Positions 5,615-51,201 of a stretch of 64,000 nucleotides of DNA are shown piece by piece. Below the pieces are notes generated by a model. The model was given only the letters and a program-made list of their open reading frames with translations, was not told the DNA's origin and did no database searches. This DNA is from Penicillus capitatus (taxonomy: Eukaryota > Plantae > Chlorophyta), in NCBI GenBank assembly GCA_965649825.1, contig OZ287695.1, positions 1,159,081 to 1,223,080 on the forward strand, in the 5' to 3' direction. Position 1 is the first letter of the stretch. The number at the start of each line of letters is the position of its first letter. Made by a program: the position numbers and the translations under genes.

Positions 5615-7114
5615 TTAGTATCGCACACTCTCCTTGTGGTACAGGTATGTCTCCATTCTCGTTATTTTGGAGGCCAGCTGCAGGTTCTTTTCTTTCATCT
5701 TGCACATCTCTCTTTTGTGTATCGTATGTCGTTCGCTGAGCTGTGCGTAGTTCAGCTTCGTTTGGATCAATTCCTGCATCACTTCGTCCACATGTGTCAA
5801 CTCTTCACGCAATTCTTTGCGCTCTTTGTCCATATCCACATGCTCTGTACACGATCCAATCAATGACGTCTCTAATGCGCGTTTTTCGATATTCAGACTC
5901 TCTCGAGCTCTTTCGCTCACTCTCAGCTGGTTGCTGAGTTTTGCATTCTCAGCTTTTGCTGCCAAGAGCTCCTCGTGCAGACCATCGATCTCGGTATTGC
6001 TCTGCTGAGCGAAGTATTGATAATCATCGACCAATCTTTCATAGCGCATTTCGTATGGGGCAATGGCAGATTTGAGGGCTTCTTCCATCTCTGTCTGTCC
6101 AACAGACTCATCCACCTCTTTGACTAACTGATTCTCAAGCTCTGTTTTCTGTGAACGTTCGGATTCGAGTTCTCTTCTGAGAAAGGCAATATCGCCTTCG
6201 AATTGACGTCGCTGACTTTCTAATAATCTCTGGAGTTCATCTTTATTCTGTGCATCTTTCTTCGCCTGTGCTTCCAACTCGTCGATTCTAGCTTGAAGGT
6301 TTGCCACGATCTCGGTTGCCCCATGCATACCTGCCGCCAACACAGTGGAATCTGTGCTCTTATCAGAGTCTTGTGACAGGCTTTTGCTCAAATCTGTCGA
6401 ATCTGCAATGGTCAATGCCCCAATTGTTTCACTCCCCAGTCGATACATGTCTCCATCAAATCCTAAACACACGTCACATCATCTTCCGATTCCAAACGAT
6501 GCGAAGGACGCTCTGCCTGTTAAGTCTTGTTCGGCCATGGAACTGCGCATAGATGTCCCAGTGGACAGGCCAGATGCGGCCGACAGACTATCGTCCATTG
6601 CGGAACCCCTCAGCAAGAAACTCGAGACATGTAAGTGCAGCTCGAGTCCCTTTGCGAGATGCGGAATGTTGGTCGTCAGTGGCACGACGATTGGCCGCTC
6701 GGCATTGCCGCACGAAACAAAATGCGCCATATCCAGTACCCCCTTTGCGATGGTCGCTTTCTTCGAAGCATGGTCTTGCCCAACGGATTGCAGCTTGAAT
6801 GTGTACTCCTGTGCACTATCCCCTTGACGAGGCATGTACGTCACCTCTGTACCTACTTTTGCTTCGAAATGCAACTGTGTATCTTTGTAGAGCGTGGCGA
6901 CTTGGGAAAGATGGCGGTTGAATGTGGCAGAGCCTGCCTTGGTGACAGCAGCATCCGTCACTTGAACTTTGCTCCCACGCGTCCACAACACGCGCAGAGG
7001 GGTGGGTGCGGCGAACACGCCAGTGACGCGCTGCACTTCCACGTCGAAGCGAAACTTTACCGCTGTCTTTCCATCGCGCTTACGCTCAAACGAACGTGAA
7101 AATTTTTTCAACAT
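5615..7114 (-). CDS. NT-C2 (EEIG1/EHBP1 N-terminal C2) domain protein with C-terminal coiled coil
   Basis: KFRFDVEV..LRVLWTRGSKVQVT..SQVATLYKD..FEAK|EYTFKLQ..KGVLDMAHF is an NT-C2 fold. A GC-AG intron at 6516-6463 restores EQDLTGFD. A long coiled coil follows. Confidence 0.8.
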
Positions 7115-7243
7115 TACGAACAACGCCACAACAATCAGCAGCGTCTCTATTCACCATCACCTGCATCACGACCATCATCAACATCAACAGCGATACATTC
7201 TTTCCGACCGTTTTGCGCAGCGAAGAGTACTGGAGCAGCGTCA

Positions 7244-8957
7244 ATGGTTATTTCTCAGCTATGGGACCAGCTGGTCGACTGTATATGTCGCCCTCCGAGG
7301 CGAGAAACTGTTTTCCTTCCGTTCAGTGGCCAAGACATGTGGCGTGTAGAGATGCGTATGGGGTTGAAGATTTGATAGGTGGTTATGGAGGACGTTATTC
7401 TATTGGAAGTCATCGAGGTTTTCGTGAAGACTTAGAACTGGTACGGCGGGTGCTCGGCGGGTGAGATGCTCTCTCAACGAGCGGTTGCGACGTTAGGTGA
7501 ACAACCAAGGACAAAAATTGCAATGCAGTCATTTCAAACCTCAAGTGATGGCAGAAGAAGAAGGACCCTTTCCGTGTGTCGTCTACTGTCATTGCAACAG
7601 TGGCAGTCGAAGGGATGCCGAAGAAGCTGTGATTCTGCTCGTCCCACAGAAAATCTCTGTCTTCTGCCTCGATTTTTCTGTTGAGTGCCTTCACGTGTTG
7701 GTCTGTGTGGATGAGAGTGGTTTAGGGTTCTGGATTATCAGAGGGACAGTGGGTGACCCTGGGAGCAAATGAAGTTGAAGACCTGCAGATAGCCATTGAT
7801 CATTTGAGATCGGATCGACAGATTTCGACCATTGCCTTATGGGGGCGATCGATGGGGGCAGTGACGGCACTCCTGTACAGCCGTCGTGATCCTACCATTG
7901 CTGGGATGGTGCTCGACAGTCCATTCTCCAAACTGAATGATCTGATGCTAGAGCTGGTTCAAGAACAGCAAGTCCCTATCCCAAGAGCCCTGGTCCGAAT
8001 CGCCCTTATGGCAATGCGAAGATCTGTGCGGAAGCGTGCCGGATTCGACATTTATACGATCTCACCTGTTGACGTTGTTAATGAGTCTTTTGTTCCTGTC
8101 CTCTTTGGTCAGCTCCTGTCACCATGCGCTGTGTCTGATGTCGTGTACAGGTCATGCTGATGGAGATACTTTTATAAAGAAAGCGCATTCTGAGCGACTC
8201 CTGGAGCACTATGCAGGAGACAAGAATCTCATCACGTCAGTCTCGGATGCTTCTGCTGGCAACATCGAGTTGAGCTCTGTTTGTGATCTGTAGATTTTCA
8301 GGGGACCATAATTCCAGAAGAACTCAATTTTTCTACAGTTCTGTTACGATATTTTTCCACAATACTCTTAAATTGCAAGGAGAATTGGCTGAAGCGCAGC
8401 CAGACTTGCCAGTCATTAATGGCCCACATTATGATATGGGTGCCACCAATGTTCCGTGGAACAGTCTCCGTTGGGATGGATCTCATGCCATTCTGGATAC
8501 CATGGATGCTCTTTTGGCTGAAGAAATGGGCCGCGCTTCAAATAGCGACGAGCTCGACAAAGACGATATCACGGAAGACGACATCCGTACCCTCGTGCAG
8601 CTACGACAGCAGCAGAACGAAGAAGAAGATGGCTATGCATGGTATCGAATGCTTCCAGGATCTCAACTGGAAGAAGAGTCCATGCTGCAAGCTGCTTTGA
8701 AAGCATCCTTCGAAGAGACAGTGGTGAACGATGAAGAAACGTCTTCGCCTCAGGCTGCCGCAGATCACAGTCTGTCTTCCAAAGCAGAACACGGATCCAC
8801 AACCGATCCTTCATCCGATGACACCGTAGAAGGCAGTTCGCCAGTGGACGATAAAGAAGAGTGCGTTCCGTGTCAGAGGCATAAAACAGCAATGGATGCA
8901 CCATTGCCTTCGGGGTCTGACGCAGATCCTCCTTCAAAAGAAGATATGTCCGATTGA
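7244..8957 (+). CDS. Alpha/beta hydrolase (serine aminopeptidase S33-like) with acidic C-terminal tail
   Basis: Spliced model reads MVISQLWDQLVDCICRPPR|DAY..KLQCSHF..VVYCHCNSGSR..DFS|GSGLSEG..LWGRSMGAVT..VLDSPF..GDHN. Five introns, the first GC-AG (7300-7349). Confidence 0.85.
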
Positions 8958-11370: not shown

Positions 11371-11423
11371 ATAACACGCACACGTCTTCTCAGACCATCG
11401 ATTTCTCCACAACGTCATTTCTC

Positions 11424-13504: not shown

Positions 13505-14472
13505 TCTTTCAGGTGCTGTAGAGATTTTTCAGCGGCATGACAGCTGAATTGAAGGATGATGTGACATCCACGACGGCAGACTTTGAGACAGGAGAGAAAT
13601 CTCTGTCGTGAGAGTCTTCCGGTGACGTGACAGCAGATCGGTGCCTCTTCAACACAAATCTTCCAATCAACCGAATCTTCGATGATCTCTCGCCAGGCAC
13701 CAAACGTAGCACACATCACAGCAACAGCCTCCTACAGAGCATCTCTCACACAACAACGGCAGCGCAAATGCCGTGCAGCCAACGACCTCCTCTTCTGCCT
13801 TGGTTGGGTCGATGAGAATCGAGTCATCTCGAGCGATGGCCACTGTCAAAGAGCCTAAACAGATTCCGTGAGTGACTCCAACTTATGACCGTGGACTTGC
13901 ACTCCATTGAGATATCATGGGAATGCCGGCGTCCATCAAAGCGTGAAAGGCGGCATTGAAGGCACACGACAGCAGAGACCCGTCATCGTACAGAACCTTA
14001 ATGACGACTCCGCCATCAACATTCGGCCGTCGACCAATGCGTCGACGCACTTGAATGTTCAGGCGGATGAAGCATCGGGGAAAGGACTTTAGAAGGAGCC
14101 TTTGATGCAAAGCATCATGCAAAATCTGTTTGATCTCTGCTTCCCGCTCGCCTGCAACACCCACCCGTTCGAGAACAGGCTTAACGAAACGCGATCGTCG
14201 TGCCCATGTCTATCTGCGCGATCGTGATGCTGATATCGAGAATTCCTTTCTCGTCCGATTCGGCATTGGATGTGAGATGCGGTCCGTAAACGGCAGCCAG
14301 TACAGACGTCAATCCCTGAGTCCACCGGGCGGAACCGGCCGATCGCAAGAGCTCTCCACGATGACATATCAATCCTCTGCAAGTGCATCGTTCCGCCGAT
14401 CGATTCGGCTACTGCTACTGGACTTTCTGGATACCTGAGTGCATGGTGTTGACGAGCATCAGTCCGCAACAT
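13501..14472 (-). CDS. RRP46: Exosome complex component RRP46 (EXOSC5)
   Basis: MLRTDARQHHALR|GLICHRGELLRSAGSARWTQGLTSVLAAVYGP..G|EREAE..DDGSLLSCAFNAAFHALMDAGIPM..IDPTKAEEE. This is an RNase PH fold. One GC-AG intron at 14203-14152. Confidence 0.88.
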
Positions 14473-15035: not shown

Positions 15036-15748
15036 ATGGACGAAGGTCTTCGCTCAAATGGTCGCAAGGATCTTAGCATCACGTTTGACGGTGTGCGTGA
15101 TAAGAACATCGAACAACTCAGAGTACTGAACAATGTACTGTTCCCCATTCAATATCAGGCACACTATCACTCTTCTGCTGTTATACCGTTACACTTTTGG
15201 AGCAGGATAGCTACTACAAGGACTGCTTAGCATCAGAAGAGGTGTCGCAATTTGGTAAAGGATACAACAGCTGTGAGGGAACGAATATTGAAATGGACTG
15301 TTGTGTTTGATAGCTTTTTTCAACTCCGTCAGTATCGGAGCGATCGCCTGCCGTTTAGAAAAGCAGGTAAGAACGCGTCCTTCTCACACACGTCACATCA
15401 CACGGATACCGGCAGGAGAGCGGCAAGGCCAAACTCTACATCATGACCCTCGGCGTCCTGGCCCCCTATCGAAGAATGGGTGTTGGTATCTTTCTATTGC
15501 AGCCTTTTTGCGTGCAGCCTAGATCGCGTCTTCTAGGCAGTGGACTGCTGAGGCGTGTGCTGAAAGTCTGTTCCCAGAATCGTGATGTCACAGAAGCCTA
15601 TCTGCATGTCCATGTGGACAACACAGAAGCCATAGAGTTCTACAAGAAGTTCGATTTCGATATCATAGAGACCCTGCCAAACTACTACTCGAAACTGACC
15701 CCCTCTTCTGCTGTTCTCCTGTCTAAGCAGCTGCATAAGGACCTGTAG
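15036..15748 (+). CDS. NAA50: N-alpha-acetyltransferase 50 (NatE catalytic subunit)
   Basis: LNNVLFPIQYQ|DSYY..GAIACRLEK..LYIMTLGVLAPYRRMGVG..YLHVHVDNTEAIEFYKKFDF..NYY. Four introns, the first GC-AG (15159-15205). Confidence 0.92.
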
Positions 15749-15832: not shown

Positions 15833-17471
15833 ATGGGTCGACACGAGACGGATAGACCACGCGTCGACGTCGAACCATCGACACGCAAAAGCAAAGAGCA
15901 CGAGCAGCAGGAAAGCGAAGAAAACAAGAAGAGCGTTGCGCGAAAAGTGCGTCACAGTCGCTCATCTGTGGCCTCTCCGTCTCCGCCGAAGAAAAAGCAC
16001 CGTCTGCGCGAACAGACCACGACAAAAGAGGTCGGCCACCCTTGAATACCTGGTGTATTGACTGTCAACTTTCTTAAGGGCGAAACGCGTGGGCTCACTA
16101 AATTTCAACGGCCAGGCGTTCCGCAAGAGACACCCAAGAGTGAACTGCAATTTCCTAACCGTTATTCGCCTCCAGAGCGCACTGCGGACGAAGTGAGGAT
16201 TCTTCTCTGCTGTTCAGGGAATGCGTAAATTTCTGCGGTGCAGCATGGCTTCTATCGATTTCGCTACGGAGAGAATCTCACACCGCGTTATAAAATCATC
16301 TCAAAGTTGGGTGAAGGGACATTTGGCCTTGTCCTCGAGTGTTGGGATCGTACAGAGAAGTGTTTTGTTGCCGTAAAAATTATCAGAAACATCGAAAAGT
16401 ACAAAGCAGCTGCTATGGTGGAAGTAAGCCAACACATTTCTCACTCTATCTCACTCTTTCTGACAGTTAGAGGTGCTCAACACGATCAAAATCAATGACC
16501 CAGACTCTGAATCTCACTGCATTACCATCAGCAAATGGTTCAACTACAGAGGTCACGTCTGCATGGTGCACGCACTCCTATCATGGGCACGCGGGTCATT
16601 TCATGATGATGGGACTGTTGGCAGGCATTTGAGAAACATGGACCCAGTCTCTACGATTTCCTTAAGAAAAACAACTACAATCCGTTTGACATCGATGTTG
16701 TACGAGATATTGGCTATCAGCTGCTGAAGGCTGTGACTTTCCTGCACGATCTCAACTTGGTTCATACGGATCTGAAGCCAGAGAACATTCTCTTCGTCAA
16801 GGATGGGTACGAACGACGTTCTGCGTCACCCAGCTCTGTCAGGCAACACCTTTGATCTGCCAGTTGTCTTTTCATGGACTGCCTGCTGATATCACTGTGT
16901 CTTTAGTTCTGGATTGAGGGTGCCATCCGACACGTTTATTCGCGTTATCGATTTTGGCAGTGCCACTTTTGAAGATGGCCATCACGGACGGATCGTCTCC
17001 ACACGGCATTACCGTGCACCCGAAGTTGTGCTGGGCATTAAATGGGGCAACGCGTGCGATCTCTGGAGTGTGGGATGCATCCTGGTTGAGCTCATCACAG
17101 GGGAGACGCTTTTTCAGACTCATGAAGATATAGAGCACTTGGCTATGATGGAACAAGTTCTGGGCCGAATTCCTAAATCGCTGGCCGAACGCTGCGATCA
17201 TCCATCAAAGAGATACTTTCACTTTGACCATCAACTGAACTGGCCGGAAGGCGCCTCAAGCCGCAAGAGCATACGCGCCGTCCGTCGGCTACTGAGTCTA
17301 CGAAATTGGGTAGCAGAGATCGGCGACAAAAGCGTAAAAACTTGCATAGACGACTTCGTGGATGTCGTTACCTCGCTGATGAGATTCGAACCGACGGAAA
17401 GACTCTCTGCTAAAGATGCACTGCACCATAAGTTTTTCTCCTCTATTGCTAATGGACCTGAGACGTTTTAA
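15833..17471 (+). CDS. LAMMER/CLK (AFC-like) dual-specificity protein kinase
   Basis: YSPPERTADE|HGFYRFRYGENLTPRYKIISKLGEGTFG..VAVK..HTDLKPENIL..IDFGSA..STRHYRAPEVVLG..EHLAMMEQVLG, which includes the LAMMER motif. Five introns. Confidence 0.92.
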
Positions 17472-21001: not shown

Positions 21002-22788
21002 CTAGGCATCAGAAGGCGCTTCTTCTTCTTCGTCCTCCATTGCGATCGATTCGTCGATCCTGTACTCTGTGGAGACGTCCCATCGACATCCGGGCGCCGC
21101 CGCCCCTATGTACTTTACGAATTTGATCAATCCTTTATCCGATAACACGAGATTCAACGTATTACTGACAGGACTGACGGAGAGAACGCCGCTATCGTCG
21201 TCATCTGCACGGTAAACATCTGCCGCAGATTCTTCTTTGGTGTCAGCCAGGAGATAAGCCTCGAATCCGCCAACCTCTCCGAGATCCCATTGCGCCTGAG
21301 CCACTTCATCCGGACAATGAACAAAACACAAAACAGCATCCAGTGTCTCTTTATTCGACGGACTGTAGAGCGCAATGGTATAATCGGATCCCGGGCGAAA
21401 ACACCGCACCTCGGAATCCCCACCGGTCAGCGTGACACCTGTTAGCTGATGGAGCAGGTGGTAGAAGGCCTCCGTCTGAAACACCTCAGTCTCGATCCGA
21501 TGCAAGAAGTCGCCAATCCTGCCAGTGGCAGAGGATAGGTTGTCGATTTTGTGTTCGCGAAACTGCAGATGACGTCGTTTGTGAGGTGGTCCTTTGACAA
21601 TCCACCCTTCATTGTCGGCATCTCTGCTTGACCGCATTTCCTCATCTGCTGCAGCAACAAAGGTCATGGATTCTTCGATTGTGTCGCTGTTTAGGAAATC
21701 TCTCAGTTGGATGCTTCCTTCTTCTTTGAATGTCTCATAGATTTGCTCAATGTGTGCATCCTCCAAGTAGATTGGATTCACCCATTTTTTCAGGTAGTCG
21801 ATGACTTCTTGTTGTAAGCTCTCTCCTACGATGTTCGCTTTTCCGAATCGTCTGGAGTTGAGAACGCGAGTCAATACCGTGATCGCTTTGCTGGAATGTG
21901 AAGTTGAGGGGCGGCGGCGCTGTTTCGCTTTGGATTTGGTGCAAAGACGACTGGGCAATTCTTTCATGATCTGCTGATGTATGAAACCATCCCGAAATAC
22001 TCAAACGATGATTCTCAGCCGTCTTCACTTCCTCGACGGAATGGAAACTTACATCCGGTTCCGTGCAGAAGAACACCATCTGATTCCACTGCGGGAGTAT
22101 TCTCTTTGCCGGTTTGTGATCCGGCTCTACAGGCATACACTCAAAATGATGAATAGCGATCCGTGACCACGTGCCTTTATTGTCGTTTACATCATAAAGC
22201 TCCAAAGCGCCGCCATTGGATGCCTGCCATTCCGTTTCGGGATCGGTCAGGTAGATGATGTAGGACACACATCGACTGCCGATGACATCATCGTGACACA
22301 GGAGATGTCCACTCTCTGGATAGATATTACAAGAGCAATCCACTTGTTGCGTCAGTTGCGGACATCCAGTCACCTCTTGGACAAAAGAGCGAAACTCCGA
22401 TGAATAGACGGCGTCCCTTAGTGCTAACAGAGACTGTATCTCTTTGTCGGACGTGTCCAAATTTGCCAAATCTCCTGAACGGCCGCCGATCGGAATAAGA
22501 TCGTGCGTCGATCGGTCGATCTGATCATACTTGTTTGCAAGACTTTAAAAATGTCCGTTTCTTTGTAGTCTGCTTTGAGATGCTCGATGATTTCGTCTCG
22601 AACGGTGCGCAGAAAGGCGTCGTCGCAGAGATCCGAGACGGTAAGGTGTGGAAAGGGCTTCGCATTGACGAAAGTACTTTGCAGAGCTTTACGTTCTTCG
22701 ACGGAATAGGAAAGAGGTGCTAATGGGATCGGCTGCGGCGCATCGCCGACTCGGAGTTTCTTGCGTGCGCTGTTGTCCGATTCGCTCA
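21002..22788 (-). CDS. OGFOD1: 2OG-Fe(II) prolyl hydroxylase OGFOD1/TPA1
   Basis: FVNAKPFPHL..DLANLD..VDCSCNIYPESGHLLCHDDVIGSRCVSYIIYL..GGALEL..FHSVEEV..RLSISGWFH, followed by the second domain (CFRPGSDYT..EVGGFEAYL). Three introns. Confidence 0.9.
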
Positions 22789-29209: not shown

Positions 29210-29246
29210 TGCATGGAATCTTGATTCATTTTGCGTGCATTATCCA

Positions 29247-30912: not shown

Positions 30913-33900
30913 ATGGAGGCCGAAGATTTCCCACGCGGTCGCGAATCTGAGAACGAAACGAACACGATTGAGCAAGGCAAACGTCGAAAACGAACCAGAA
31001 AGAAAACCAGATCTCGACCTGTCGCATCTGAGAACTTTTTGCCCAGGACACTCGACGTTGATGATCTGCGTGTACCATTCATTTCTCATTTTCTCGGCAC
31101 TTAACGCAGATCGCCTTTAGTTTCGTGCCCCTGGTGTGAAATTAATGGGAATGGTCACAGAAGTGACCGAAACCCATTTGCGAGTCAGTCTCCCACATGC
31201 AGTGGAAGAAACTGTTGAAGCACTCGAGGCTTCAGACGTGTTAAATGTCCTGTTGAGTGAGGACGGTGATGGCACAGATGACCGCTTTCTGCGAGAGTTG
31301 CATGGAAAGCCCCCACCGCTGACGGAGCTCTTTGCACCTGGACAGTTTGTACACGGGACATATATTGAAAATACAAACTCCGATTGTCAGTTCTCGCTGA
31401 GATTGCAGCATTTCTACAGAGGCACGATTCTGTCAAAACTTCCAGAGGGATCTCTTGTTGCCGGATGCGTCCGCACGATCGAAGATCATGGTTTCACCAT
31501 CTCGTTTGGCACCAAGGTCACTTTGCTGTAAAAGGAACTCACTTTGGAATGGTGTTGTTTAGGGCATCTCTGGATTCCTGACAAAGACAGAATTGGAGTC
31601 GTCTTATGGAGAAGGCTCTTCTCTGCATCCAGGCCAGCTTTTGAACGGCGTTATTAAATCCTCCGGGACTCGAGGCGTCATCCAGTTGACCATCGATCCT
31701 GATTCTGTCCGAAACAGTGTGATGGTGGACACGGCTATGTCGGCATGTCAATGTATCGTGCCTGGAATGCTCATTCATGCTGAGATCACACAGATCACAG
31801 ATGGAGGAATCTTGCTGAGCGTCATGAAACACTACAAGGGCATCATCAGTCTTTTTCATCTGCCAAAAGTGACAACGAAACAGGCAGAAATCAATTCGTA
31901 ACTGAGAACATCTGCTGACTTTGTGTAGGAAGAGGTCGCGGATGGGTGGCAGTCAGATTTTATCGAAGGCCAAATCGTACGAAGTCGTGTACTGGCTTGG
32001 GATCCTGACAGATCTGTCTACCTGCTTTCGCTGAAGCCTTTCTTGGTTGGACTAGAGTTACCCAGAATGCCAGCGATCATTGGACAAGTCTTCACAGATG
32101 CCATTATCCAACGAGCCGATCCGATTGGACTCTCTCTGAAACTCCCGACGCGGCCAGTCCCAACCCATGCTTTTGTCTTCCAGCACAGTCTTGGCGATTT
32201 GCCGCTGCAGAGCACAGATTTCAAACTCAAGCAGTTGGTATCTCTACGTGTGACTGGCTTTCATGCGATGGAGGGTTTAGTTATTGGCAGTCTGAAGGAA
32301 TCTGTTATACGCAGCGGGATTGTCTGCTTTGATGATGTCTATCCTGGGAGAGTCTCTGAAGGAAGCCTCGTTCGTATTTGTGATGATCATGTGTACGTGT
32401 CAATGGGCGAAGGGATTCAAGGACTGTCACGGCAATGTGGATTCTCTGCGAATATCTCCCTTCGACAAATCTTTAATCCTGGACAGCTGGTTGCTTACAG
32501 AGTCCTGAAGCTCAAACCAGAAACGCATCAAGCCATTCTATCCTTGGACGCTCAGCTCGTGCACGCTTCTCTTCCGTTTCTGACAAGTTGGGATGATATC
32601 GAAATAGGACTACGTGTTATTGGATATGTTTTGGCCGTCAAGTCGAAGGTCGTTATCGTGGCATTTGCCGGAGACATCCATGGAGTGATGGCAGAAGAGA
32701 ATACGAGGCTTGGACCTGGGGAAACGCTGACGGACTGTTTTCAAAAGAACCAGATCATCAAACCATGGATCAAGAACTATATCCATCGTCGAAGGAGGTT
32801 GATACTGACGACGATCAAACCCCAGAAGTCAACAAGAACGAAAGCATTGGCGACTCAGTGTCATCCATGCAGTGATGTTTGCAAGGCACCTGATTCTCTG
32901 GCAATCGGCGAGTTGGCAGAAGCGTCTGTTGAGAAGGTAAAGACACAGCAAAGGAATCTCAGTTCGATAGATGTATGCACAGGTGCTGCCACGAGAGATG
33001 GGTTTCCTTGTGGCGTACACGACACTAGAGAGTCAGGTTCGAGGAAAGGCCATTTTGCCTCTGAGTCAGTTGGCGGATCACCCGTTTGTGCAGCAACATT
33101 TGGTAGGGAGTCTCACGCAGGGCACTTCTATTGGACACGTGGTCGTTCTGAAAACATCTGTTCCTGTGGAAGTGTCCAAAAAGCCCAGTCTCATCAGCAA
33201 TGCATCCATGTTGCCACGGCATTTGGAAGACATGAAAGAGAATATGTTGCTTCATGGGTATATCTCTTTCGTCGGCGCAGACTTTGTCAATGTCTCTTTT
33301 CTGGGAGACCTCTCCGGTCGTGTCTTCAAGAATCAGATGCCGCTATCTGCGCTGTCACCTCACAAGCAGTTCCAAATGGGACAGTCTGTCTTGGCACGCG
33401 TTCTCAAGGTAGACGAAGAGCGACGACGCATCAACTTGACATTGAATCCAAGTCGGACATCCACGTCAGATGCTATGCTTCTGGAAGATGCCTTGGAAGA
33501 TATTGCACGTATCCGTGGGGGTGTCTTTCCCTATCAAGGCAGAGGGCATCGAATTGGAGAGATCTTGGAGGTTGTTACAGAGTCTGTCGAGAAAGAAGAG
33601 ATCCGCTGCACGGTTCCTGGCAAAAAGAATCTAATAGGTATTATTCCTAAAGCACATCTCGGCGAGGAATCTCTGGAGGCGGAGACGACAGGTCAAACGA
33701 TCAAGGCCTGTTTACTAGATGTCAGCACGGAGGGGCATTTGATTTTGTCAGCAAAACCTTATCTCATTGAGAAAGGCTTCAAGACGGTGAAGAAAGGGAA
33801 GCGAAAACGAAAAGACAGACCAACAGTGGAGAAGAATCTAAATGCCGTTGTCGAATGGATTGCCGCGTACTATTTGGTTGTCACGCTTCCAGATAGAGAT

Positions 33901-36039: not shown

Positions 36040-36106
36040 AAAGATACGTAACAGTCGTTGCGCCCAATCGATCGAAATCAGTAAAGGATTGCCGAAGAAG
36101 ACAGAC

Positions 36107-36396
36107 CTGGTAGTGAGGTGGGATGCAAGACGATGCCTACTCGACGGACGTGTTTGTTTTCTGTGAAGATTTTGTCGTAGCTCTCGTCTAGTACTTCGCC
36201 GACGCTTTTCTTTGAGACGACGTCGAGAGCTTCCTTCGACGCCAGGCGCGGATCGCTGATTTCGGAGAGCAATAGCTTCGGGAAATACGTCGAAGTAAAG
36301 CAATGCTTCGTGGACTTCTGGTCGAAGCGAAGGAACGCAGCGTCGAACCATGAAGCGATCGAAACATCGCTCCGCCGAAAGCCGACGTCGCGTCAT
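36107..36396 (-). pseudogene. DPE1: 5' fragment of plastid 4-alpha-glucanotransferase (DPE1/amylomaltase)
   Basis: KSVGEVLDESYDKI..RRVGIVLHPTSLP(G) matches the DPE1 N-terminus and ends at a GT donor (36106). No downstream DPE1 exon was found in the window. Confidence 0.7.
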
Positions 36397-37116
36397 GTCA
36401 CCTCGAAACCTGACGGACCTTCAGCCACAGCTCTTCGAACGTTGAGCGATTGTGTTCGATGAGGGCAGAAGAAACACGAAGCCATGTCACCGACAAAAAC
36501 GATTGTAATCAGAGCAATCGTGATCTCAAAGCCTCGATCGAGTGCCTTTGACAAAGACTGGACGATAGAAGGATCGAGGACAGTGGTTAAGCGCGGATTT
36601 CTTTCTACAGGATGACTGTCAATTTCTTACAAGTATTGTATACTCGAAAGAAAGAGACTGCAGAGTGCATTGACCGTTCTTTTTTTCGCTTCTTCCGATG
36701 TGTCTACGGCGGCATGAGGGAAACCATCGTATTTTATTATCCCACAGATATGCAGGGCGAATTATCCAGTCTCTGCACATGGTTAGCAGGGAAGACGGTC
36801 TGGATATGTTGATGCTTATTCATGAGTTCGAAAGCACCAATCCAGTAGCCACTTGCGTCTTCTGTCATGTACATCGAATCCGTTAGGAATGCGATGGCAA
36901 ATCAAAAAAGTAGGTCTATATCAATGATGTTAGTGTAGATAGACTTTACTAGCCCACAAGCAGATCGATACCAGCATCTCTAATGCCGATACAAGCACAC
37001 AGACAACACCACTATGTCATTGAAATGTCTGTTTTTGTGTTTCAAATCGACTCAAAAGGGAAACCGTCAAATCGAATGTGAGAGATTCTCATCCGCTTAC
37101 TAACAGAAGGGACGTC

Positions 37117-40100
37117 TCAGGAGCAGCATTCCAAGCATTGAATAATGCTGTTGCGCTTGTGGCGAATCCACAACGCGAGTACTCGCAAACTTGCTGTATT
37201 GGATTCGAAAGGTTTCCCTTCTTCTGCCATCTCGAGCTTCAAGTAGTCGATGAAATAGACAAAGAGGAAACAAACGAAGACAACGAAAGCGATAATGTTA
37301 AGCAAACCACACACGACTGAGATAATTAAGCGGCCTAGATCATCCGTAAAGCTCTGGCTCTTCAATGAAACGGCAGTCAGAGTCGTCAGGAGAGAGACAA
37401 AAAGCGAACCCAGTTCGACCCTGTTCAGTTCATCGAATCTCTTGCGATAAGGCTTCGCTGCGATGTGCCCCACGATGACGAGAGCAATGAGGGCAGTGGA
37501 GCCGACGATGGCCAACTGACTGTCAAAGCGCTGTGCACAGAACATCAGGAGTGCAATGAATGCTTTCCTCAAGGCGACAGTGACTTCCCAGTATCGTCGA
37601 GCTCCGAGCTTGTACCCACGATACAGGAATCCCATTGTCTGATAGCCAATGCTGTCGGTGTCCAGAAGTCGATCTTCTGGGCCGACGATGACGACGACAA
37701 AGAGAATGAGTGCGCCACCGTAGACGGTACCAACAAAGATCCACACCACTTCAGCCAGTGTCAGATGATCGGCCTTCAAGCACTCCAAGCTTGTATCCAC
37801 TGCCCAGTACATGATTTTCTCCTCTTCCGTGCCATTCCAGGACATGAAAACGTCCGTGCACAGTCCTGTGCTGAACGCCGTTTTCATCACTGGCACCGAG
37901 GTGATGTACCAGATCGCCATCAGCGAAATCAGCGTTCTCTTTCCCAAGAACGACAACCGCTGTTGCTGGTCGCGCTTGAAAAGAGTGACTGCGATCCAGA
38001 AGAGACTGAAGAGAATGAACACCAAAGTCGGAACAACGCACGCACTGATCAGGAAAGCGATGGCTGTTGGATGCAACAATTGGTCTCCGATGGACAGACA
38101 CGCTGCCGAATGCTGGATCGTGTCCGATGCAAGTCCGCCCAAGAACTCTACAACCACGAAGGCAGTCTTCAGATGACAGCGCCGCTGAAATGGCTCACCT
38201 CCCACGTGTGCCATGACACGAATGGAGAACGCCCATCCGACGTTCGCCGAAAAGATCAAAACAGTGATCTGGATGTAGTTCAACAGGATCTGTCATTGCC
38301 AGAAATGAAGAAACAGCGGACTTCATTGTTTCATACCTTGAGCATCTCAATGCCCTTCCACTTAGCGAGCATTCTTTCACTGGTAGGCACTCCATCCATC
38401 TGCTCAGATAACGTTCTGTTTCGTCCTCTGCGATGACCGTGTTGCGATTCTATGTGTTCGGCACTGTCCCGTGCCGAAGGAGTGGAGAGGTTGGACAAAG
38501 AACGTCTTCCACGACCAGAAAGCGCTGATCGTCTGTGGTTAACAGTGCTCAATGTCCCTTGTATCGTGATGGCTGTCAAGCCAGAGACAATCACAACGGA
38601 CATGCCTATCATAAGGATGCTGACAAAGTCGACTGGACACCTCTTGCATCTCGAAGAGAAAAGACTCCCATATCCAGTGTCGCAGGATCCACACAATGGA
38701 CCAGAATGTCCCTGGGAACAGAAGAAATGACTTTTTATCTCAACGTCTGTGGATGGATGCCTTGCCTCGGCACATTGCATTCGCCTGTACTCCAGTACAT
38801 CGTTATGGCTCATGTCACAACTCACCACGGCATCCGTTTTGTTATGCAGTGCGTCAGAACGATTCTCGGACGTGCAGGCGTGCGCCGCCAGACATTTTTT
38901 GATGTGTGTAGAGCATGGGTTGCTCTGCCAGTATCCTTCATCTGGCACGATCACCCTTGTTTCGCAGATGCCGTTTACAGGACACGGCCGACATCTGTCT
39001 TCTTTGGGATTGAAACTGTACTCTGTGTAGCTGCAGTTTGAGCACATCTCCGTGTCGGGATTGGTGGTCACTTCTCCAATGATGCATTCTCGTACATTGA
39101 TACTGACTGTTAAATCCTGGATGGCTTTACTGTCGAACACGATCATTAACTTGTAAGTGCCTGGCGGGCCAAATCCAATCATGTTAGGGAAGCTAATCCG
39201 ATCTTCATGCACCTGTGGCGAGGCATTAATCATGGTGAATTCGACAGATGGTGATGTTTTTGTTGAGGTATTAGGGAAGTAACCAACAGAAGTGACCTGG
39301 TTTAGACCATCGATAAACTGCAGAGTCATTTCTGGGAGTTCTTCGCGGGCGCGATATCTCTTGATGATGTACTCGTGTTCACTGCGCATGTCCACGTCGT
39401 ACTGCGAGTCGTCGATCGTAATGTTCACTCGCCTAGGGCATGATCCAACAACACGACCATACGCAGCAGCTTCGTTATTCTCCCATGTATCGCAGAACTG
39501 TTCTTGAGAAGTAAGTGTCTCCAAACCGATCCAGTCTTCTTCATCGAGAAACTCCAGATTCGAGGCTGTCTGCATTGTCGAGCAACGGAAACGAATGGCT
39601 TCGAGATATTCCGCAAAGATAGCCCCTCCAGCCGAAGTTGCGTTGTTGTCTACGAATTGAGTGTCAATGATAGCTGCGAAGGCACAACCCTCGCCATACT
39701 CCAGACACTCTGTGGAAACGAAGGGATTCACGAAACGCAGACCACCTAAAGGGAGATGATACATCGATCGTCGACTTGCTGCCATTGAAGAGAAAACTCA
39801 CCTCCGACCTTGGCCGTGTTGCGCGAGACTGAAGTCCCTTCCAGTTGGAGCACCAGTTTCTTGTCGTTCTCGTCCGCTTCGAATGAAATGGCACCACCAC
39901 TCTCATTTGCTGAGTTCTTCTGCAAGACGCAGTCGACACATACGATTGCCGAGTATGTCGACATCAGTGCACCGCCATGTGTCTCTGCTGAACAATTTGA
40001 GACATCCAGACCCCTTGTTTTCAGCACGGAAGTGAGGACATCAATTGCCCCTCCTCTTTTAGCACTGCCGCGGGTCATGGATGTGCTCTCGATGTGTACA

Positions 40101-42421
40101 TCGCATTTTTCGGACAGGGAGATGAAGCTGCCTCCCAAACCAGCTGTTCCGTCACTGAACTCTGAATCGGTAAAGCTCAGTTTTGCGTACTCCGCAGCCA
40201 CCGAGCCCCCGTAGCGTAACGCGGTGTTCTCTTCAAAAGTCACACTGCTGAAGTATCCTGTGCTTTTCTCGCCATGCTCAACAGCTCCACCATCTCCTGC
40301 GCGATTCTTTTTGAACAACGATTGGTGCACGCGAAGTTCGGTGCCGAAGTCTGCAGAGATTCCACCGCCTTCATCTTTGGCAATGTTTCCTTCAAAGATG
40401 GAACCCATCACACGAACATACGACTTGCCTGCTATGATGCCTCCGCCTTCATCTCCAGCTCTGTTTGCTTTGAAAGACGTTTGTTTTATAATAACTCTGC
40501 CGCATTCATATACCTTGATGCCTCCACCTTCTTCAAAGGCATTGTTTCCCTCAAAGTCTCCTTTACTTATGACAACTCTTGAGCGTCGTGCATAAACCCC
40601 ACCACCATTGAAAGCACAGTTGCCGTCAACATTTCCTCCGACAATGTTCATCGTCGATTCTTCGACGTAAATGCCACCGCCACCATTGCGAGCCTCGTTT
40701 GAATGAAACTCGCAATCTTCGATCTCTGCTGTCACACGATCGAAATACGCAGCCCCTCCATATGACGAGGACGGAGAAGTCTCTTCCCTTGCATCTCTCT
40801 CGATGGAGCATCGTCCACTAGAAGGACGTCGAGCACTGGCCACCAAACCAGCTTCGTTGTTCCTGAAGGTCGATTTCGTGATAACGATGTGTGTCTTCCT
40901 AGCATCAATGGCACCCGCAGATTCTCCTGCTCGATTTGATATGAATTGGCATGAGTGGATTTCGAGAGATCTTCCATCCCTAACAGAAAGAATCCCTCTC
41001 TTGCGCGCAATGTTCTTTTCGAATGTGCTCTGTGCAACAATGATGCTCGATCCAGTGGCTTTGATTGCCGCACCGTCATCGCCTCCATTCCTTTGAAAAA
41101 CGCATTCGTTAATAGACACGTTCGCATCTGTGAGTTTCATGCAGGAATCGGCATTGTCTCCTGCTTCGCGGCCAGAAGCTCCCGAAAATGTCGAATTTGA
41201 TAAGTTCAAACGTCCTTCGACGACTTCGAAAAGCGAAAACGGATTCTTCGTTGCATGAATCTGGCTTGCATGAGTTCTGGATCCAGGAGGCATTCGAAAC
41301 ATGACAGGGTTATGTGCCGATTGTTTTGCCGCTTGGTTCTTCACGACAGTGAGTCCGTGGAGCGAGTTATCTTCGGACAAGAGTGCACCACACAGCCCAC
41401 CGCAGGTGTTGTGGCGGAAAGAGAAACTTCTGATCCTCAAGACAGAGCAGTGCCCGGAATTCGCTCTTATGGCGACGGATCCGAGGAGTCTGTTGTGGCT
41501 GAACCCCACGTGATCGAATCGAACAGCGCCTTTCGCGTCTTCGTGACCACACTCTACGTCGACGATGGCGCGAGTCCCGTTGGAGTTGTCGAATGAGCAT
41601 CCGTCGACGTCGATATTCGCCAGAGTCATGTCGCCGGTCCTGCGCGACACGTCCAGAATGAACAGGAGACGAGACGGGGCAGACCACCTGATAGAGAGAA
41701 GACCTTCATTCTTCCGCGGACAGGTGAACGCTGTCCGATCGGTCGCTTGAGGAAACGCACCGCCCTCGAGCTTCGGGTTCTCCACGTACGCGCTCAACGT
41801 CAGCGGCCGGGAGACGATGATGCGTGCGGACGGCTTGATCGTCTTCGTAACGTCGAAGAGGAGCGTGTCCCCTGCATTCGTACAGTCGATTATTTTTTGG
41901 ATGTCGCTATTGATCTCGTCGAGGACGGCGTCGGTCACCAGCCACACTCCAGTCTCATCGTCGACAAAGCGGTCGACCTGTCCTCGCCTCAGCGAACATC
42001 CCTCTCCTGTACCGTCGCGATGGTGCCCCTCGGACCCGTCAGAAAGACGAGACGAACCTGTCTTTGTCGCAGTGTTCGAGTCCGTCGACTGAAGCAAAGA
42101 ACGTCTCTCCACTCTCCCCTGTTCACAGTACAAGTCAGCGACTTCCGTACAGATGAAGAGAGCCGCGATGCGTACGGTTCGGTAGAAGGAGAAAGACGAT
42201 GTTGCATTTTCAAACATCAGTCTACGCCTGTCTTCTGTCGCGTTCAATTCTGCAGCACGTCGAAACAGTCGCCGACGACAAAAGTGGCGAGTGCCTTTTC
42301 GAGGCAGGCAATAGATGTCTTCTGTATGCGCAGAGTGCCATTTTCGGCACGTCGTAGATTGTTCTGTGGAGTGGGCCTTCTGGGCGAACAGACAAAAAAT
42401 AAAGACGAGTGAGAAATGCAT
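37117..42421 (-). CDS. Large secreted-ectodomain multi-TM protein: pectin-lyase-like beta-helix (GGA/FxxN repeats), Cys-rich region and about 7 TM segments
   Basis: Signal peptide; many N.A..GG(A/G)I repeats; CSNCSYTEYSF..CRPCPVNGIC and CAE|GHSGPLCGSC; C-terminal hydrophobic helices with FLYRGYK...YWE and NRVELGSL. Introns join the three large ORFs in frame. Confidence 0.85.
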
Positions 42422-44539
42422 CTTTTAGCCGACACGCAAAGTCGCGTTTTTATAATCTGCAGAATATTAGCCAGCTGTGTTGTCTAACTGCAAAACAATT
42501 AGTTGTTCTATTTCCTTCCAATGGTGACCGTACCGCTATTATTCATTTCATTGCTTGTGTTCCGCGTGAACTCCGGATCAGTGTGGTTCTTCACGCATTT
42601 TTCGGGGTTCTCCGAGGTGACTAACACCTTCTATGCGAATTTTGGGTGGTCGAATAAGGCATCTTGAACCAATGTCCGCCTGCATACACCTCGACTGTCT
42701 TCTTGTATCTACCAAACAGTCACTCTGAATCCATCTCTTCGACGCAGTAAAGCAACCGAGCGCTGGACCGGTTGTACTGTGTGCTACGGAATGGATTTGA
42801 CACGCAGCGGGATGTCGATGTTTTTCCTTGTTGCCAACGCGTTCGTACGCGTTCGGTACATGTGGCTGAGAAAGCTGTTGGACCTACCTTGCTTAGCGTG
42901 GGATGCGTTAACGTCAACGGCACAAGAGCAGCAACTTTGATGTCGCCGTCGTTCGTCTCGCGTGCGGTTCTACAAAGCAGAGGCGGTTTGCAGACTGTGC
43001 TTCGACTGCAGTTGGATGGGGGTGGTGGGTCGTTTACATCCAGGTAATGTGCAATTGCCTCGACCAGTCGATGCCAACAAAACTAACGCAGTCCGCACAA
43101 CGCGCTACGTCGTTGGACGCAGTAGTGCTATGGGTTGCTGGGAGAGATAGGCGCCGTACAAAGCAATAACGCAAGCGTCGACGTTAACCGGTTAACGGTT
43201 TTCCTTGAAGGTCGTCGCCATATCAAAACACTGAAGTTGTCGTTCCATCTGGTACGCTGCTTGGGCATACATAGCTCGAAAAGGGATTTCTGTCCTCAGA
43301 TGGTTGATGAGGGCCATGGTATCGATTCGTTGATCCTTACTGAAGAAAGCCTTATAGCACCAACCGAAGCCAATTGAAAAGCCTTGTGCGTCTAGTCGAC
43401 TTCATAAATGAATCCTGAGTGTCAGTCCACGGAGATCAAAGGTTTGTTGGATCGTGGGTTGCATTTTGCAATGGTTGTTAGCAGTGGAATTCTCGACACA
43501 GAAGCAAATGTCGACGCTTCGGATGAAGGGGACTCGAAAGAGAGCCTCTCTTGTAAATCTCTCTAGTCGCATAGCTTCCCACACGCTGCCACTTCCAAAA
43601 TAAGACCATACCACCTGTCTTGAAAACATTTCGTGGGTTTGCGTTCACTTGTACTTTCAGCGGTTCCTCAATGAAGAGCACCTTCATCTGCTATCCTTCT
43701 TTTCCACGAATCTAAGGTTCCGTTGTACAACGCCGTTGAGAGTTTCTACCTTGTCTTGATGCCAGAGTCGCCAGATTTCTCAGAACTTAGATAAAGGCTA
43801 TTCGAGTCGTCAAGCAGATAAACAAATAGTGGATTGATTTACAAAGAACCTCATAGTTTGCAGCAAGATGAGTCCGAATCAACCATAAACGACTCTTCCA
43901 GATATGCGAAGGCGAGTTTCGAAGTGTGTACGAACTGGTTGCCTTCCCATAGACGTCCAATCTACAAGGCAATATCGTCAATTGATACAGACGTGGTTTC
44001 GTGCTTCGCTGGTTCATAGCGACCCTTACCTTGATCCCATGTGTCTGGTGATCTGATACGAAAAATTTAGTTCTACATTACCTCGAATGTTCTCTCGAAT
44101 CTTAACCAGAAGTGAACATGAAATTCATGTCGATAGACATGCAGAAGAATCGTCAGCGAATACGATCTCACTGAATCATTCCTGTGGAGATTTCATGCAA
44201 CGTTGTGAATTGCGCTAAGCAGAAAGGGGAAGATAGCAGCAGCAGATGCTTGTTGCGGCGGGACAGTGTCTTACTCAGTCGCATTGGCGATTAGAGTAAC
44301 GCAAAATTGGACAGTTTGTATCAACGTCGCTTTCAATGATTTCTTCCTCGACCAGAGAAGATTGTTCTCTGTGATTAGTATGCCGATACTGTAATGCGCG
44401 AATCGTGTGTGGAGACAACAGAGATTCATTCGTCCAAAATGATTGACAGGTCTGAAAATTGTCGAATAGCAAGAAGTTTGACGCCTAGGTGATTAGCAAA
44501 AATTGTAAAGTCGATAGCAGGAAAAAGAGGTTTCGAGTC

Positions 44540-45132
44540 CTAAAAAATAACGCGGTTCATGTTGATCCCAGCATTCTCGTAGAAAGCAGCAGGCAGTTCA
44601 GGACAGGGGCACTTTCCCTCGCATGCGAGATCGGTCCCTGCATGGCGAAGCTTGCACAGACTGCCATACGTCTTTCCATCGACGCCACAGACCGGTTTGT
44701 AAATCTCCGCACAGTGGCCTGTGCGACAAGGGCACTCTCCTCCACATGCGACGTCGACCTTTGCACATTCCGCTGCACATTTGTTGGGATACGTCTTGCC
44801 ATCAGCGCCGCAAACTGGATCGGAGATCAAAGGACAAGCGCATGCTTTGCAGGGACACTCTCCCTCGCACGCCTTTTTGACTCCCTTCTTCTTCAGCGCG
44901 CAAAGACTGTCATACGTTTTTCCATCTACGCCGCAGACTGGTTTGTCAATGCTGCCACATTCACTATTCGCGAGGACATTCCCTGGTCCCCATGTTGCTC
45001 TACTGTGACTTTCGTGCCCAGCTAAACACGCGAACGCTTCTTAAACGAAAGCATGTTTTAGATCTCACCATATGCGCTGACCCCAAGGGCGAACGTCGCC
45101 AGCAGACAGATAAAAAGTTTAGAAAGAGACAT
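44540..45132 (-). CDS. Secreted protein with three Kazal-type protease-inhibitor domains
   Basis: Signal peptide exon MSLSKLFICLLATFALGVSAY, one GT-AG intron, then three copies of PVCG(V/A)DGKTY..C..ACxGxCPC. Confidence 0.9.
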
Positions 45133-48100: not shown

Positions 48101-48592
48101 TTGCAACGTTGCCCAGAGATTTGATGTAGCTCATAATAATCACCAAGTCTAATCGAATGGGAGTTCAGATTTCACATAAACAAACAGCGAAGATATTTCT
48201 GAACTCTGGATACATGCCACTCACTCATTCCCGTAACAAACGTGAATAACGCGACCTCGATTCGAAATGTCATTGTTTGACAGCAAATGATAATGCCGCT
48301 ATTGTCATCGAAAACAGACGATATTGAAAAGCCGCAGATGTTTTAGTTTCGATCCTAAAGTTTTCTCGGGCAATACACAGTATTTGTTAATCATGGACAT
48401 TCCATAACAAACACAACAGTCATACTGACCTCCATTCATCCCTTGCATACAGGAAATCAGTCGTTCAGGTCCCGTGTTCGCCTGATTTGAATGTTTGATA
48501 AGTGCTTGCTAAAACATGGAGGCACTCTAACGGAAAGTTCAGTTAAAGTTAGACAGTTGTCCTAGTGGAATGCTTAGTAGCAGAGGATTTTA

Positions 48593-51201
48593 TTAAAACG
48601 TCCCTCGCGGATGCAGGAGTTTCTTCAAAGGGGACATTTCCGATTCGGAACATATAATGTTAATAATTAGACAGGTAACGTCAAAAGGCGTGTCTCCATC
48701 ATTGTTGGTCGCCGTCTTCGATGCTCCAGCATCCACCAGAACCTGAAACGCAATCGTCGAGTTTCGATATGTTGCCGTTGACTCGCCTTTGCCGTTTTTA
48801 GGTTTCCAAAACGTGCGGCTCGGTGAAGTGGAGTTTCTCCATCGTGGTTGACCGCATTGATATTTGCTCCTTTTTCAAGCAACAGCTACATGTAACCATG
48901 TGAACAAGAGAACAGAAGCTAACAGGCATGCACCTTCACTACTTCAGGGTTTTTATTGTAGGCGGCAGCTTCGTGAAGTGGCGTCCATCCGTGGACGCTG
49001 ACGACATCAAGTTTCGCTCCGTGCTTGAGGAGTATCTGACAATAGACAGTTTCCGTCAACAAGGCGACGAAGTGAACATGCAATTGACCTCGACTTCCCT
49101 GATGTCTGCCTTAATCGCGACCCCATGCAGAACAGTGTGTCCATTGTTGCCGGCAAGGTGGACGTTCGCTCCGTGCTCAAGGAGGATCTGACAGTCAACA
49201 GTTTCTGTCAGTCAGGAAAGGAGGCGAACACGCAACCGACCTCGACCACCTCGATGTCTGCGTAATACGCTGCCTGAAGCAGAGGAGTCCATCCATCGTT
49301 ATCGACCTTATTGACCTTCGCACTGTGATCGATAAGCATCTATCAAAGACACTCGGCAAGAAGCGCGGAAATACATGAAAACTCGCCTGTACAGTTTTCG
49401 ACCGTGCATAGAACGCAGCCAAGTGTAGGGGTGTCTTCCCATCGCTATCGGCGGCGTTCACTTCGGCGTCGTGATCCAGAAGAATCTGCGAATAACCGCC
49501 AGTGCAGATACATGAGGACATACTGTAGATTCACCTTCGCCACCTTCGTGTGTCCGTTTCTCGCTGCCAGATGTAAAGGAGTTACTTTATTGCCGTTAGG
49601 CTTGTCGACACTAGCGCCGTATTTCAAAAGAACCTTTAATTGCAGACGCGAGGATTTTATAGACAGAGACGAAGTGTTTTCACTCTGTAGTCCTGAACGG
49701 ACGCAGAGAAGCAACTACCTCAGTGCATTCTGACGCATCATTGGCCGCCGACCAGTGTAACAAGGTAAAGCGTTTCCTTTTCTCATACCCTGACATAACA
49801 GCGGATTCATAGACAGAATTTGGATCCAGTCCCTCTAGAAGAGCAGCTTCTACAGTCAGGGTGTCATCATCCCTTATGGAGTCATAGGTTTCCTACAAAA
49901 ACAATCTGTTCATTTACAAAGATCTTCATTACCAATGCTACATTAAGCAGTTCTGTCCGAGAGAGTCCCCTCAGCCGTTCGCGCTCCTTATAAAGTTCAT
50001 CATCTTCTGGATTGTTTACCTATGAAGAACGTACATCATCTGATGAAGTTTGCTAAACAGATTCTGTCCATCTTTCTCCTGTTCTGAGCGAGCCGAGGCG
50101 AGGAAGCAAATGCAGAGAACCGATCAATCACCTTTGGACCTTCGCCGATTTTCCATAGAATCCAGTCCCAGAATGCACCGATACTTGTGTAGATGGACGG
50201 TGATGCATCATTGCAGTTCTCGAACCCCAGAGATGTTATGCCGACGATCAGGTCGAGTTCTGGATTCCCGGCTGCTGTGTTGCCTCTAAATCTGTTTGGA
50301 ATCAACAGTGGACCGCCAGAATCGCCTTCGAGCAGAGAAGGCTTGGCAGAAAGTGCCGCTGACAAGCATTACACCTTTGCATGCGTTCTGGTTCCCGAAT
50401 CCAGCACAAATCGAATGCTTCTTGACTGCATCTCCCAGAAATCCTTTGCATTGGTCATGTTTCACATACACCAGTCTGTCTGCCATCTGTAGAGAGTTTG
50501 GATAGCCTCCAGTCTTGTCCAGTCCCCAACCCAGTGCGGTAAACAATTCACCGTCGGAGAACTGTCCTCCTTGAATATCTATCGATGGGAGTGTGATCTT
50601 TGCTTCTTTATTCAATCTGACGACAGCGATGTCGTATCCATCATGGACATCGCCAGTCCAGGATTCGTGCCGGAAACTTGCCTCGCCGCTGAATTCCTAG
50701 TGAGTATTCCTTTCCGCGAGAAACATGTAAAACGTGAAGGAGTTACTTTGTCTGAGTAGCGCTCATCGAGCTTGTGAATGCCACAGCGAACAAGTGGATT
50801 TCTGCCAAGGCTGTCCGAAGATGGGTCAACGCAATGTGCTGCTGTGACCACCCATTGTGGTCGAACGAGGAATCCGCCGCAGCGGTGGATTCCATATTCT
50901 CGTCTGGAGAGACTACAAACATAAGGGAACCTTCCTTCAGGTGCTTCTTTTCCCTGCGAAAAGAACGAGCGTCAAAACCTGAATTTATGCGTGCGATACA
51001 AACTGACGATGATATAGGATGTAGTGTCTCGCGGCTCAGAGGACAATGCTTCTGAACCGTTAAAGACATACCCACGTCGGAAATGACAATCCGGGAGGCA
51101 GTACCTTCTTTTTCTTGAGCTGCTTCTATGTGGAAGTTCAAGAAAAGCAGCAGAAAAAAATGAATGCCGAGACGGCGACGCGAAACACAGAAAAGCTTCA
51201 T
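48593..51201 (-). CDS. Secreted S1A (trypsin-fold) serine protease fused to C-terminal ankyrin repeats
   Basis: Signal peptide; catalytic triad motifs VTAAHC, YDIAVV and GDSGGP; linker exons; then about 7 ankyrin repeats (GxTPLHxAA), six of them on single-repeat exons. Confidence 0.8.

Follow-up and report, generated by a model that had tools for sequence, protein, structure and literature searches.

In plants, animals and fungi, 97.9-98.7% of introns begin with GT and end with AG (PMC7072748). Introns that begin with GC instead are abundant in a few algae: GC-AG introns make up 39.6% of introns in Aureococcus anophagefferens, 22.2% in Micromonas pusilla CCMP1545 and 7.7% in Chlorella sp., an excess that was ascribed to the 64-70% GC content of these genomes and termed "an enigma" (PMC3033335). 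More recent figures for pelagophytes are 14-17%, with 14-17% in newer annotations of Aureococcus and ~14% in Pelagomonas (bioRxiv 10.1101/2024.10.30.620910). Here we analyzed 64,000 nucleotides (nt) of the green alga Penicillus capitatus (assembly GCA_965649825.1, contig OZ287695.1, positions 1,159,081 to 1,223,080; hereafter the window), in which an earlier sequence-only reading had proposed nine GC-AG introns. Eight of them are firmly supported and the ninth is probable, and the nine are likely ordinary U2-type GC-AG introns, frequent because recognition of the 5′ splice site is relaxed overall.

Compared with the GC-AG introns of U2 type known from animals, plants and fungi, those of the window are alike in their AG acceptor, in sharing the length class of the local GT introns and in matching the U1-pairing consensus more strongly at the flanking positions; also as elsewhere, orthologous introns tend to keep the GC donor and switch only occasionally between GT and GC (PMC7072748). 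They differ in their share, ~10-25% here instead of ~1%, and in that only two of the nine donors have the near-perfect form GCGAGT and none reads GCAAGT. A large GC-AG share is common to the window and to Aureococcus, Micromonas pusilla, Chlorella and Pelagomonas; however, those genomes have 64-70% GC whereas the window has 49% and T-rich introns, and Bryopsidales (Ulvophyceae) are not represented among them. Relaxed use of the donor dinucleotide also recalls the GC and GA donors of dinoflagellates and the GA-AG introns of Oikopleura and Eurytemora (PMC7072748), but only GC is used besides GT here, with GA in 0 of the 38 introns that we curated. A high GC-AG share is thus already known in a few algae, and what is new here is its occurrence at ordinary GC content. 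Within the library that we searched, no literature linking GC-AG introns with Bryopsidales, Ulva or Caulerpa was found.

The window is nuclear DNA of a eukaryote, densely populated with genes on the two strands and ranging from 45 to 51% in GC content, and it carries a gene for a light-harvesting protein of green-algal type (Lhca1) at ~11.3-12.1 kb; searches for tRNA genes and Rfam matches returned none across the 64 kb. Caulerpa lentillifera is the best named relative, with 84% identity between its protein g2381.t1 and the product of the hydrolase gene of the window and 54% identity between g2363.t1 and the NT-C2 protein, and Bryopsis sp. comes next with 73% identity. Judged by these protein similarities, the window belongs to the lineage of a bryopsidalean green alga (Bryopsidales, Ulvophyceae) near Caulerpa, either a seaweed or an endolith. 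The product of an 891-residue open reading frame (ORF) of the window matches, at 100% identity, a protein predicted on ENA ERZ25074695 ctg340449, a contig that we take on this match to be the window's own contig or one from an identical genome. Most comparisons were made with ENA ERZ26696514 ctg303811 (the "related species"; loci L006 and L001), which is syntenic with positions 1-34,125 of the window at ~85% DNA identity, and with its counterpart of the PMP-repeat gene segment at window positions 36,089-42,954 (locus L002, 79%). Three further loci were used: a paralogous PMP-repeat segment on the window's own contig, ERZ25074695 ctg340449 (L003, 91-93%), a 2-kb genomic contig carrying the Ofd1 gene of a more distant relative (L004, 72% protein identity), and a spliced hydrolase transcript from the Logan RNA-seq assembly of a relative that is 91% identical in protein (L005, run SRR6256325).

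All nine candidates (c1 to c9; Table 1) start with GC and end with AG, and an exonic AG directly precedes the GC donor in eight of them, as the sequence-only reading had stated. Each junction was examined with a solver that lists all GT-AG and GC-AG introns capable of joining two anchor peptides in frame and free of stops. For c2, c4, c6 and c8 the solver returned no GT solution. Candidate c1 was the sole solution of either donor type between its anchor peptides, and its removal yields EQDLTG/FDG (a slash marks the splice junction throughout), thereby restoring the EQDLxGFD motif that C. lentillifera g2363.t1 (as ADQDLTGFD) and distant homologues (as EQDLSGFD and EQDLDGFN) have across this junction. 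A rival 81-nt GT intron would remove this conserved motif. The related species retains the GCAGAG donor, with mismatches at 12 of 54 interior positions compared to 5 of 90 in the flanks; a scan of JGI metagenome contigs revealed no relatives of the c1 gene. Removal of c2 creates the junction CICRPPR/DAYGV, which is the same in homologues ranging from Bryopsis to flowering plants, RPPR..Y being constant in nine homologues. The alignment of the L005 transcript stops at 7299 and restarts at 7350, thereby supporting the c2 junction along with four GT junctions of the hydrolase gene, the one gene that it covers, and the GC donor of c2 is retained in the related species.

At c3 the solver left two choices, a GC intron of 52 nt and a GT intron of 34 nt. 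Splicing at the GC donor gives a product that matches rice RRP46 (PDB 3hkm) gaplessly, whereas the GT version would insert six residues; in the related species the GC donor is retained and a 3-nt indel lies within the intron. The junction at c4 was solved by the GC donor only, and the resulting product aligns gaplessly with Arabidopsis NAA50 (PDB 6yzz) over c4 and three GT junctions, which together are all four of the gene; here too the GC donor is retained in the related species. The kinase gene requires a change of frame at the site of c5, which can also be achieved in frame by a GT donor at 16825 (18 nt upstream, giving an 82-nt intron) or at ~16803 (~40 nt upstream, ~104 nt). The loop encoded by the GC version is two residues longer than that of human CLK2, and by our own count those of the two rivals would be 4 or 10 residues shorter. 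The GC version was preferred since it comes closest to the CLK2 loop length, and the GC donor is retained in the related species; c5 is a probable GC-AG intron.

The 16 residues that c6 would encode if read through occur in no distant homologue that we aligned and are found only in P0001, an unspliced ORF call from a close relative. In L004 the same position is occupied by an intron of 45 nt whose donor is GTGCCA and which contains an in-frame stop; the donor in the related species is GCAGGT. Candidate c7 contains a 1-nt insertion in the paralogue L003 and a 3-nt insertion in the related species (L002), while its donor GCAAGG is the same in the window and in both of these loci and its flanks are conserved in a coding fashion. 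A rival GT donor for c7 at 38744 (33 nt) would put the 1-nt indel into an exon. Since c6 and c7 are multiples of three and free of stops, their retention would add 16 or 18 residues with no truncation, and prokaryote-style ORF callers in public metagenome annotations do read through introns of this type, as in P0001.

The place that candidates c8 and c9 occupy in the 33-residue ankyrin repeat is also that of four GT introns of their gene. The solver gave c8 as the unique solution for its junction. For c9 the GC solution preserves the 33-residue period of the repeat, which a rival 35-nt GT intron would disrupt by adding four residues. The ankyrin gene (48743-49718, minus strand) has one phase-0 intron after each 33-residue repeat, and two neighboring ones, each 53 nt long (49188-49240 and 49036-49088), resemble each other by eye, suggesting from their sequence that ankyrin exon and intron were duplicated as one unit.

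By these comparisons, removal of the candidate introns would restore frame and homology firmly in eight of the nine cases and probably in c5. The nine GC-AG introns of the sequence-only reading are hence upheld for eight, through homologue alignments, the transcript of a relative, a GT intron at the same position and indels, and made probable for c5. Misdelimitation of several candidates, with nearby GT donors being used or with c6 and c7 being coding insertions, would explain why GT rivals can be drawn for c1 (81 nt), c3 (34 nt), c5 (82 and 104 nt), c7 (33 nt) and c9 (35 nt), and why c6 and c7 are open in frame. Yet c2, c4, c6 and c8 lack a GT solution, and the rivals are contradicted by the motif at c1, the gapless alignment at c3, the 1-nt indel at c7 and the repeat period at c9. 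The position of c6 is moreover held by a stop-containing intron in a relative, and the interiors of the candidates diverge at the rate of introns (see below). For these reasons we regard misdelimitation as highly improbable.

Comparison with the related species, which covers c1 to c7, revealed how these segments evolve. Their interiors differ at 70 of 369 positions (19.0%), nearly the value of the verified GT introns (242 of 1240, 19.5%), compared to 8.8-8.9% divergence in the flanking exons; the difference between the interiors of c1 to c7 and their own flanks is significant (P = 7×10−6, Fisher's exact test). Indels were found within introns only; the 90-nt exon flanks contain none. In all seven candidates that it covers, the related species retains the GC donor, and across the 31 introns compared between the two species, the G at +1 and the 3′ AG are unchanged. 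The candidates evolve as non-coding sequence with conserved splice sites. A sequencing error as the source of the GC is at odds with its presence in an independent assembly of another species and in the paralogue, and an origin as U12-type introns of the minor spliceosome, for which the criteria are a donor resembling RTATCCTT and a TCCTTAAC-like branch motif, is at odds with the nine donors, of which none resembles RTATCCTT. We consider the chance that either applies to be negligible.

Introner elements, a mobile family of introns, may be responsible for the excess in Micromonas pusilla, and the GC introns of the window could likewise be copies of such a family carrying a GC donor. When the nine introns were aligned, no position other than G1, C2 and the terminal AG proved invariant, and the sites of these introns are conserved between species, that of c6 being common to a relative only 72% identical in protein. 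Both observations speak against an introner origin, which we hold to be extremely improbable.

Three introns have a GT donor in one genome and a GC donor in another at the same position. Besides c6, these are an intron of RRP5 and an intron of the PMP-repeat gene, both of which have GT in the window and GC in the related species. The RRP5 intron reads aaa/GCGAGA there and is 58 nt long; its removal is needed to maintain the frame, and no workable GT donor is available. The intron of the PMP-repeat gene has GTGAGT in both the window and the paralogue and GCGAGT at the aligned site in the related species.

Table 1. Positions in the window of the nine GC-AG candidates and of two GT-AG introns whose orthologues have a GC donor.
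Feature	Position	Strand	Exon/donor	Length (nt)	Gene and remarks
c1, GC-AG intron	6463-6516	-	cag/GCAGAG	54	NT-C2 domain and coiled-coil protein gene; in-frame stop inside
c2, GC-AG intron	7300-7349	+	gag/GCGAGA	50	alpha/beta-hydrolase (S33-like) gene; after first exon
c3, GC-AG intron	14152-14203	-	tgg/GCACGA	52	exosome RRP46-like gene; frame-shifting
c4, GC-AG intron	15159-15205	+	cag/GCACAC	47	NAA50-like N-acetyltransferase gene
c5, probable GC-AG intron	16843-16906	+	cag/GCAACA	64	CLK/LAMMER kinase gene
c6, GC-AG intron	22127-22174	-	aag/GCACGT	48	Ofd1/Tpa1-like prolyl hydroxylase gene; in frame, stop-free
c7, GC-AG intron	38712-38765	-	gag/GCAAGG	54	large Chlam_PMP-repeat/Cys-rich membrane protein gene; in frame, stop-free
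c8, GC-AG intron	48743-48786	-	aag/GCGAGT	44	ankyrin-repeat gene
c9, GC-AG intron	49340-49386	-	cag/GCGAGT	47	same ankyrin-repeat gene as c8
GT-AG intron	31869-31928	+	aaa/GTGACA	60	RRP5 gene; GC donor in related species
GT-AG intron	39746-39801	-	gag/GTGAGT	56	PMP-repeat gene; GC donor in related species

To place the nine introns among their neighbors, we relied on a curated set of 38 introns from 11 genes, 29 with a GT donor and 9 with a GC donor. The confirmed GT introns come from the hydrolase gene (4), the ankyrin gene (5), the kinase gene (2), NAA50 (3), Ofd1 (1), RRP46 (2), Rpt2 (5), Lhca1 (3), RRP5 (2) and the PMP-repeat gene (2); the five of Rpt2 were confirmed via gapless alignment to 8amz_I, and those of RRP5 and the PMP-repeat gene were accepted on reading frame and conserved splice sites only. 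GC-AG introns represent 24% of this set (9/38, 95% confidence interval [CI] 11-40%), a sample biased to candidate-bearing genes. Set against the total of 85-90 introns delimited by the sequence-only reading itself, the share is ~10% (CI 5-19%), and nine GC donors among 90 introns exceed a baseline of 1.3% (P = 3×10−6). The earlier claim of about 10% GC-AG introns, far over the usual ~1%, is borne out by this test and by the curated set, with the total of 85-90 remaining that reading's own. A less biased estimate is given by the orthologues of the GT introns of the window in the related species, of which 2 of 24 have a GC donor (8%, CI 1-27%); counting all orthologous introns compared, GC occurs there in 9 of 31. 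Taken over these estimates, GC-AG introns would account for roughly 10-25% of the introns of this alga.

Two automated approaches to the same count were tried and rejected. An ab initio gene finder, a 3-periodic Markov model with intron jumps that was trained on 55 kb of long ORFs, predicted decoy donor dinucleotides as often as GC, 12-25 of each, and also put false in-frame introns into conserved coding sequence. It was unusable because coding bias is too weak in this genome: codon and hexamer bias are very weak, and confirmed exons, for instance a 193-residue exon of the kinase gene, score about zero. A conservation scan of the first 34 kb of the window against the related species gave similar counts for the 16 dinucleotides, GT included, at every threshold and was therefore non-discriminating.

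An elevated share of GC donors could arise from GC-biased mutation or gene conversion driving the T at +2 to C, and the known cases do track GC content (Aureococcus, 69.5%; Micromonas pusilla, 65.9%; Chlorella; PMC3033335; and the pelagophytes). The window, with its 45-51% GC and its T-rich intron interiors of ~46-48% GC, does not fit this pattern, making such a bias a very unlikely explanation here.

The sequence-only reading had described the GC donors as weak. They are not weak for this genome: over the seven positions flanking the dinucleotide in CAG/gtAAGT, GC donors match at 4.56 on average (n = 9) compared to 3.17 for GT donors (n = 29, P = 0.0046, Mann-Whitney test). An AG at -2/-1 precedes 8 of 9 GC donors but only 11 of 29 GT donors (P = 0.019, Fisher's exact test), and all nine GC donors have both a G at -1 and a purine at +3. 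The proposal of the same reading that donor recognition is relaxed was supported, as the GT donors, with 3.17 matches of 7, are almost free of consensus past the GT itself. Their composition is 11 A, 7 C, 9 G and 2 T at +3, and 12 A, 9 C, 3 G and 5 T at +4, with 13 G and 10 A at +5; donors as degenerate as tct/GTTGAG, aaa/GTCCGA and aag/GTCTGT are backed by transcript or gapless homology. Every non-GT donor in the curated set is GC, with no GA, GG or AT donor among the 38 introns.

In other respects the two classes are alike. Acceptors are YAG in both, usually followed by G, and lengths are short and uniform, with a median of 52 nt for GT introns (43-85 nt) and 50 nt for GC introns (44-64 nt), which is compatible with the suggestion of intron definition acting on introns of ~50 nt. 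One GT intron of the window, 15486-15536, has the donor GTATCTTTC, which differs at one position from the U12-type donor GTATCCTT; it was treated as U2-type since it lacks a branch motif resembling TCCTTAAC.

We propose that 5′ splice-site recognition in this alga would depend little on the bases of the intron beyond +2, the short uniform introns of ~50 nt probably being recognized as units. Because the introns are short and uniform and the GT donors nearly free of consensus, a change from T to C at +2 would cost little provided that neighboring positions still pair with U1 and U6, and the GC donors, with their exonic AG, G at -1 and purine at +3, display just such compensation, a pattern classical for GC-AG introns. 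The introns would then be spliced by the U2-type pathway with a canonical U1, and selection would presumably lie behind the compensation.

A deeper change is also conceivable, in which an altered spliceosome component makes C at +2 recognized about as well as T, such that the two are nearly neutral. Candidates for such a change are the U1 small nuclear RNA (snRNA) base opposite +2, U1-C, Luc7, the ACAGAGA box of U6, and Prp8. Such a change would not compete with relaxed recognition as an explanation but would lie behind it. The canonical U1 sequence is AUACUUACCUG. Rfam searches of the window and of the five related loci (67 kb) revealed no genes for U1, U6 or other snRNAs. The unusual degeneracy of the GT donors fits an altered component, as does the change from T to C at +2 in 2 of 24 GT orthologues (8%), a proportion that, with introns diverging by 19.5%, we regard as close to that of neutral transitions, and genomic GC content cannot account for the rate. 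On the other side, compensation at GC donors would be superfluous if C were equivalent to T, and Aureococcus (40% GC-AG) and Micromonas pusilla (22%) keep the canonical 11-nt 5′ end of U1 (PMC3033335). As U1 has the canonical 5′ end in the known algae rich in GC-AG introns, a variant U1 is unnecessary, and we consider a changed spliceosome unlikely.

Several observations weigh against our preferred explanation, namely ordinary U2-type GC-AG introns under generally relaxed recognition. With 38 introns, the curated sample is small, and genes flagged by the sequence-only reading are overrepresented in it; the window-wide total is an estimate of that reading. Transcript support comes from one gene and from a related species only, and c5 has competing in-frame GT donors. 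The compensation was seen at 9 sites and the near-neutrality at +2 at 31, and altered machinery (U1, U6, U1-C or Prp8) may be compatible with the data.

Other features of the window and of the compared loci were noted along the way. A suspected sixth intron of the hydrolase gene (8477-8526) was rejected: it lacks splice sites and is a coding insertion of ~50 nt, relative to the transcript of the relative, in a variable region. The segment coding for the PMP-repeat/Cys-rich membrane protein is duplicated, with one copy at 36089-42954 of the window and another at 8340-16647 of L003, and its counterpart in the related species lies at 8443-15225 of L002. L003 adjoins a GH77 gene, as in the related species, and the window copy adjoins RRP5; because the GH77 neighborhood is common to L003 and the related species, the window copy looks like a recent segmental duplicate. 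Between the matches to the window at 34 kb and 36 kb, the related species carries an Integrase_H2C2 ORF from a retroelement (L002, 4456-5205), a position that fits a rearrangement there. At 26376-28257, the window has ~1.9 kb where the related species has only ~95 bp (L001, 5877-5972); this stretch is lower in GC (~45%), lacks a convincing ORF and may represent an insertion or a mobile element. The ORF at 44543-45040 (minus strand) codes for three tandem Kazal-type serine protease inhibitor domains (Pfam E = 1×10−20), and a trypsin-like protease gene (50289-50696, minus strand) lies ~5 kb from it.

If a changed spliceosome component did prove to be involved, GC-AG would constitute a second standard class of introns, representing 10-25% of all introns across a genome whose GC content is ordinary, and abundant GC-AG introns would be decoupled from the account based on GC content given for Aureococcus, Micromonas and Chlorella. 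Under the explanation that we favor, relaxed recognition acting on ordinary U2-type introns, the combination of a mid-GC genome with degenerate GT donors points to relaxed 5′ splice-site recognition, instead of GC content, as the permissive factor. Eight of the roughly two dozen genes of the window hold at least one GC-AG intron, and gene prediction restricted to GT donors would break or frame-shift about one third of the genes in this algal group. The lineage also allows the relaxation to be tested on close relatives that differ in having GT or GC at the same introns.

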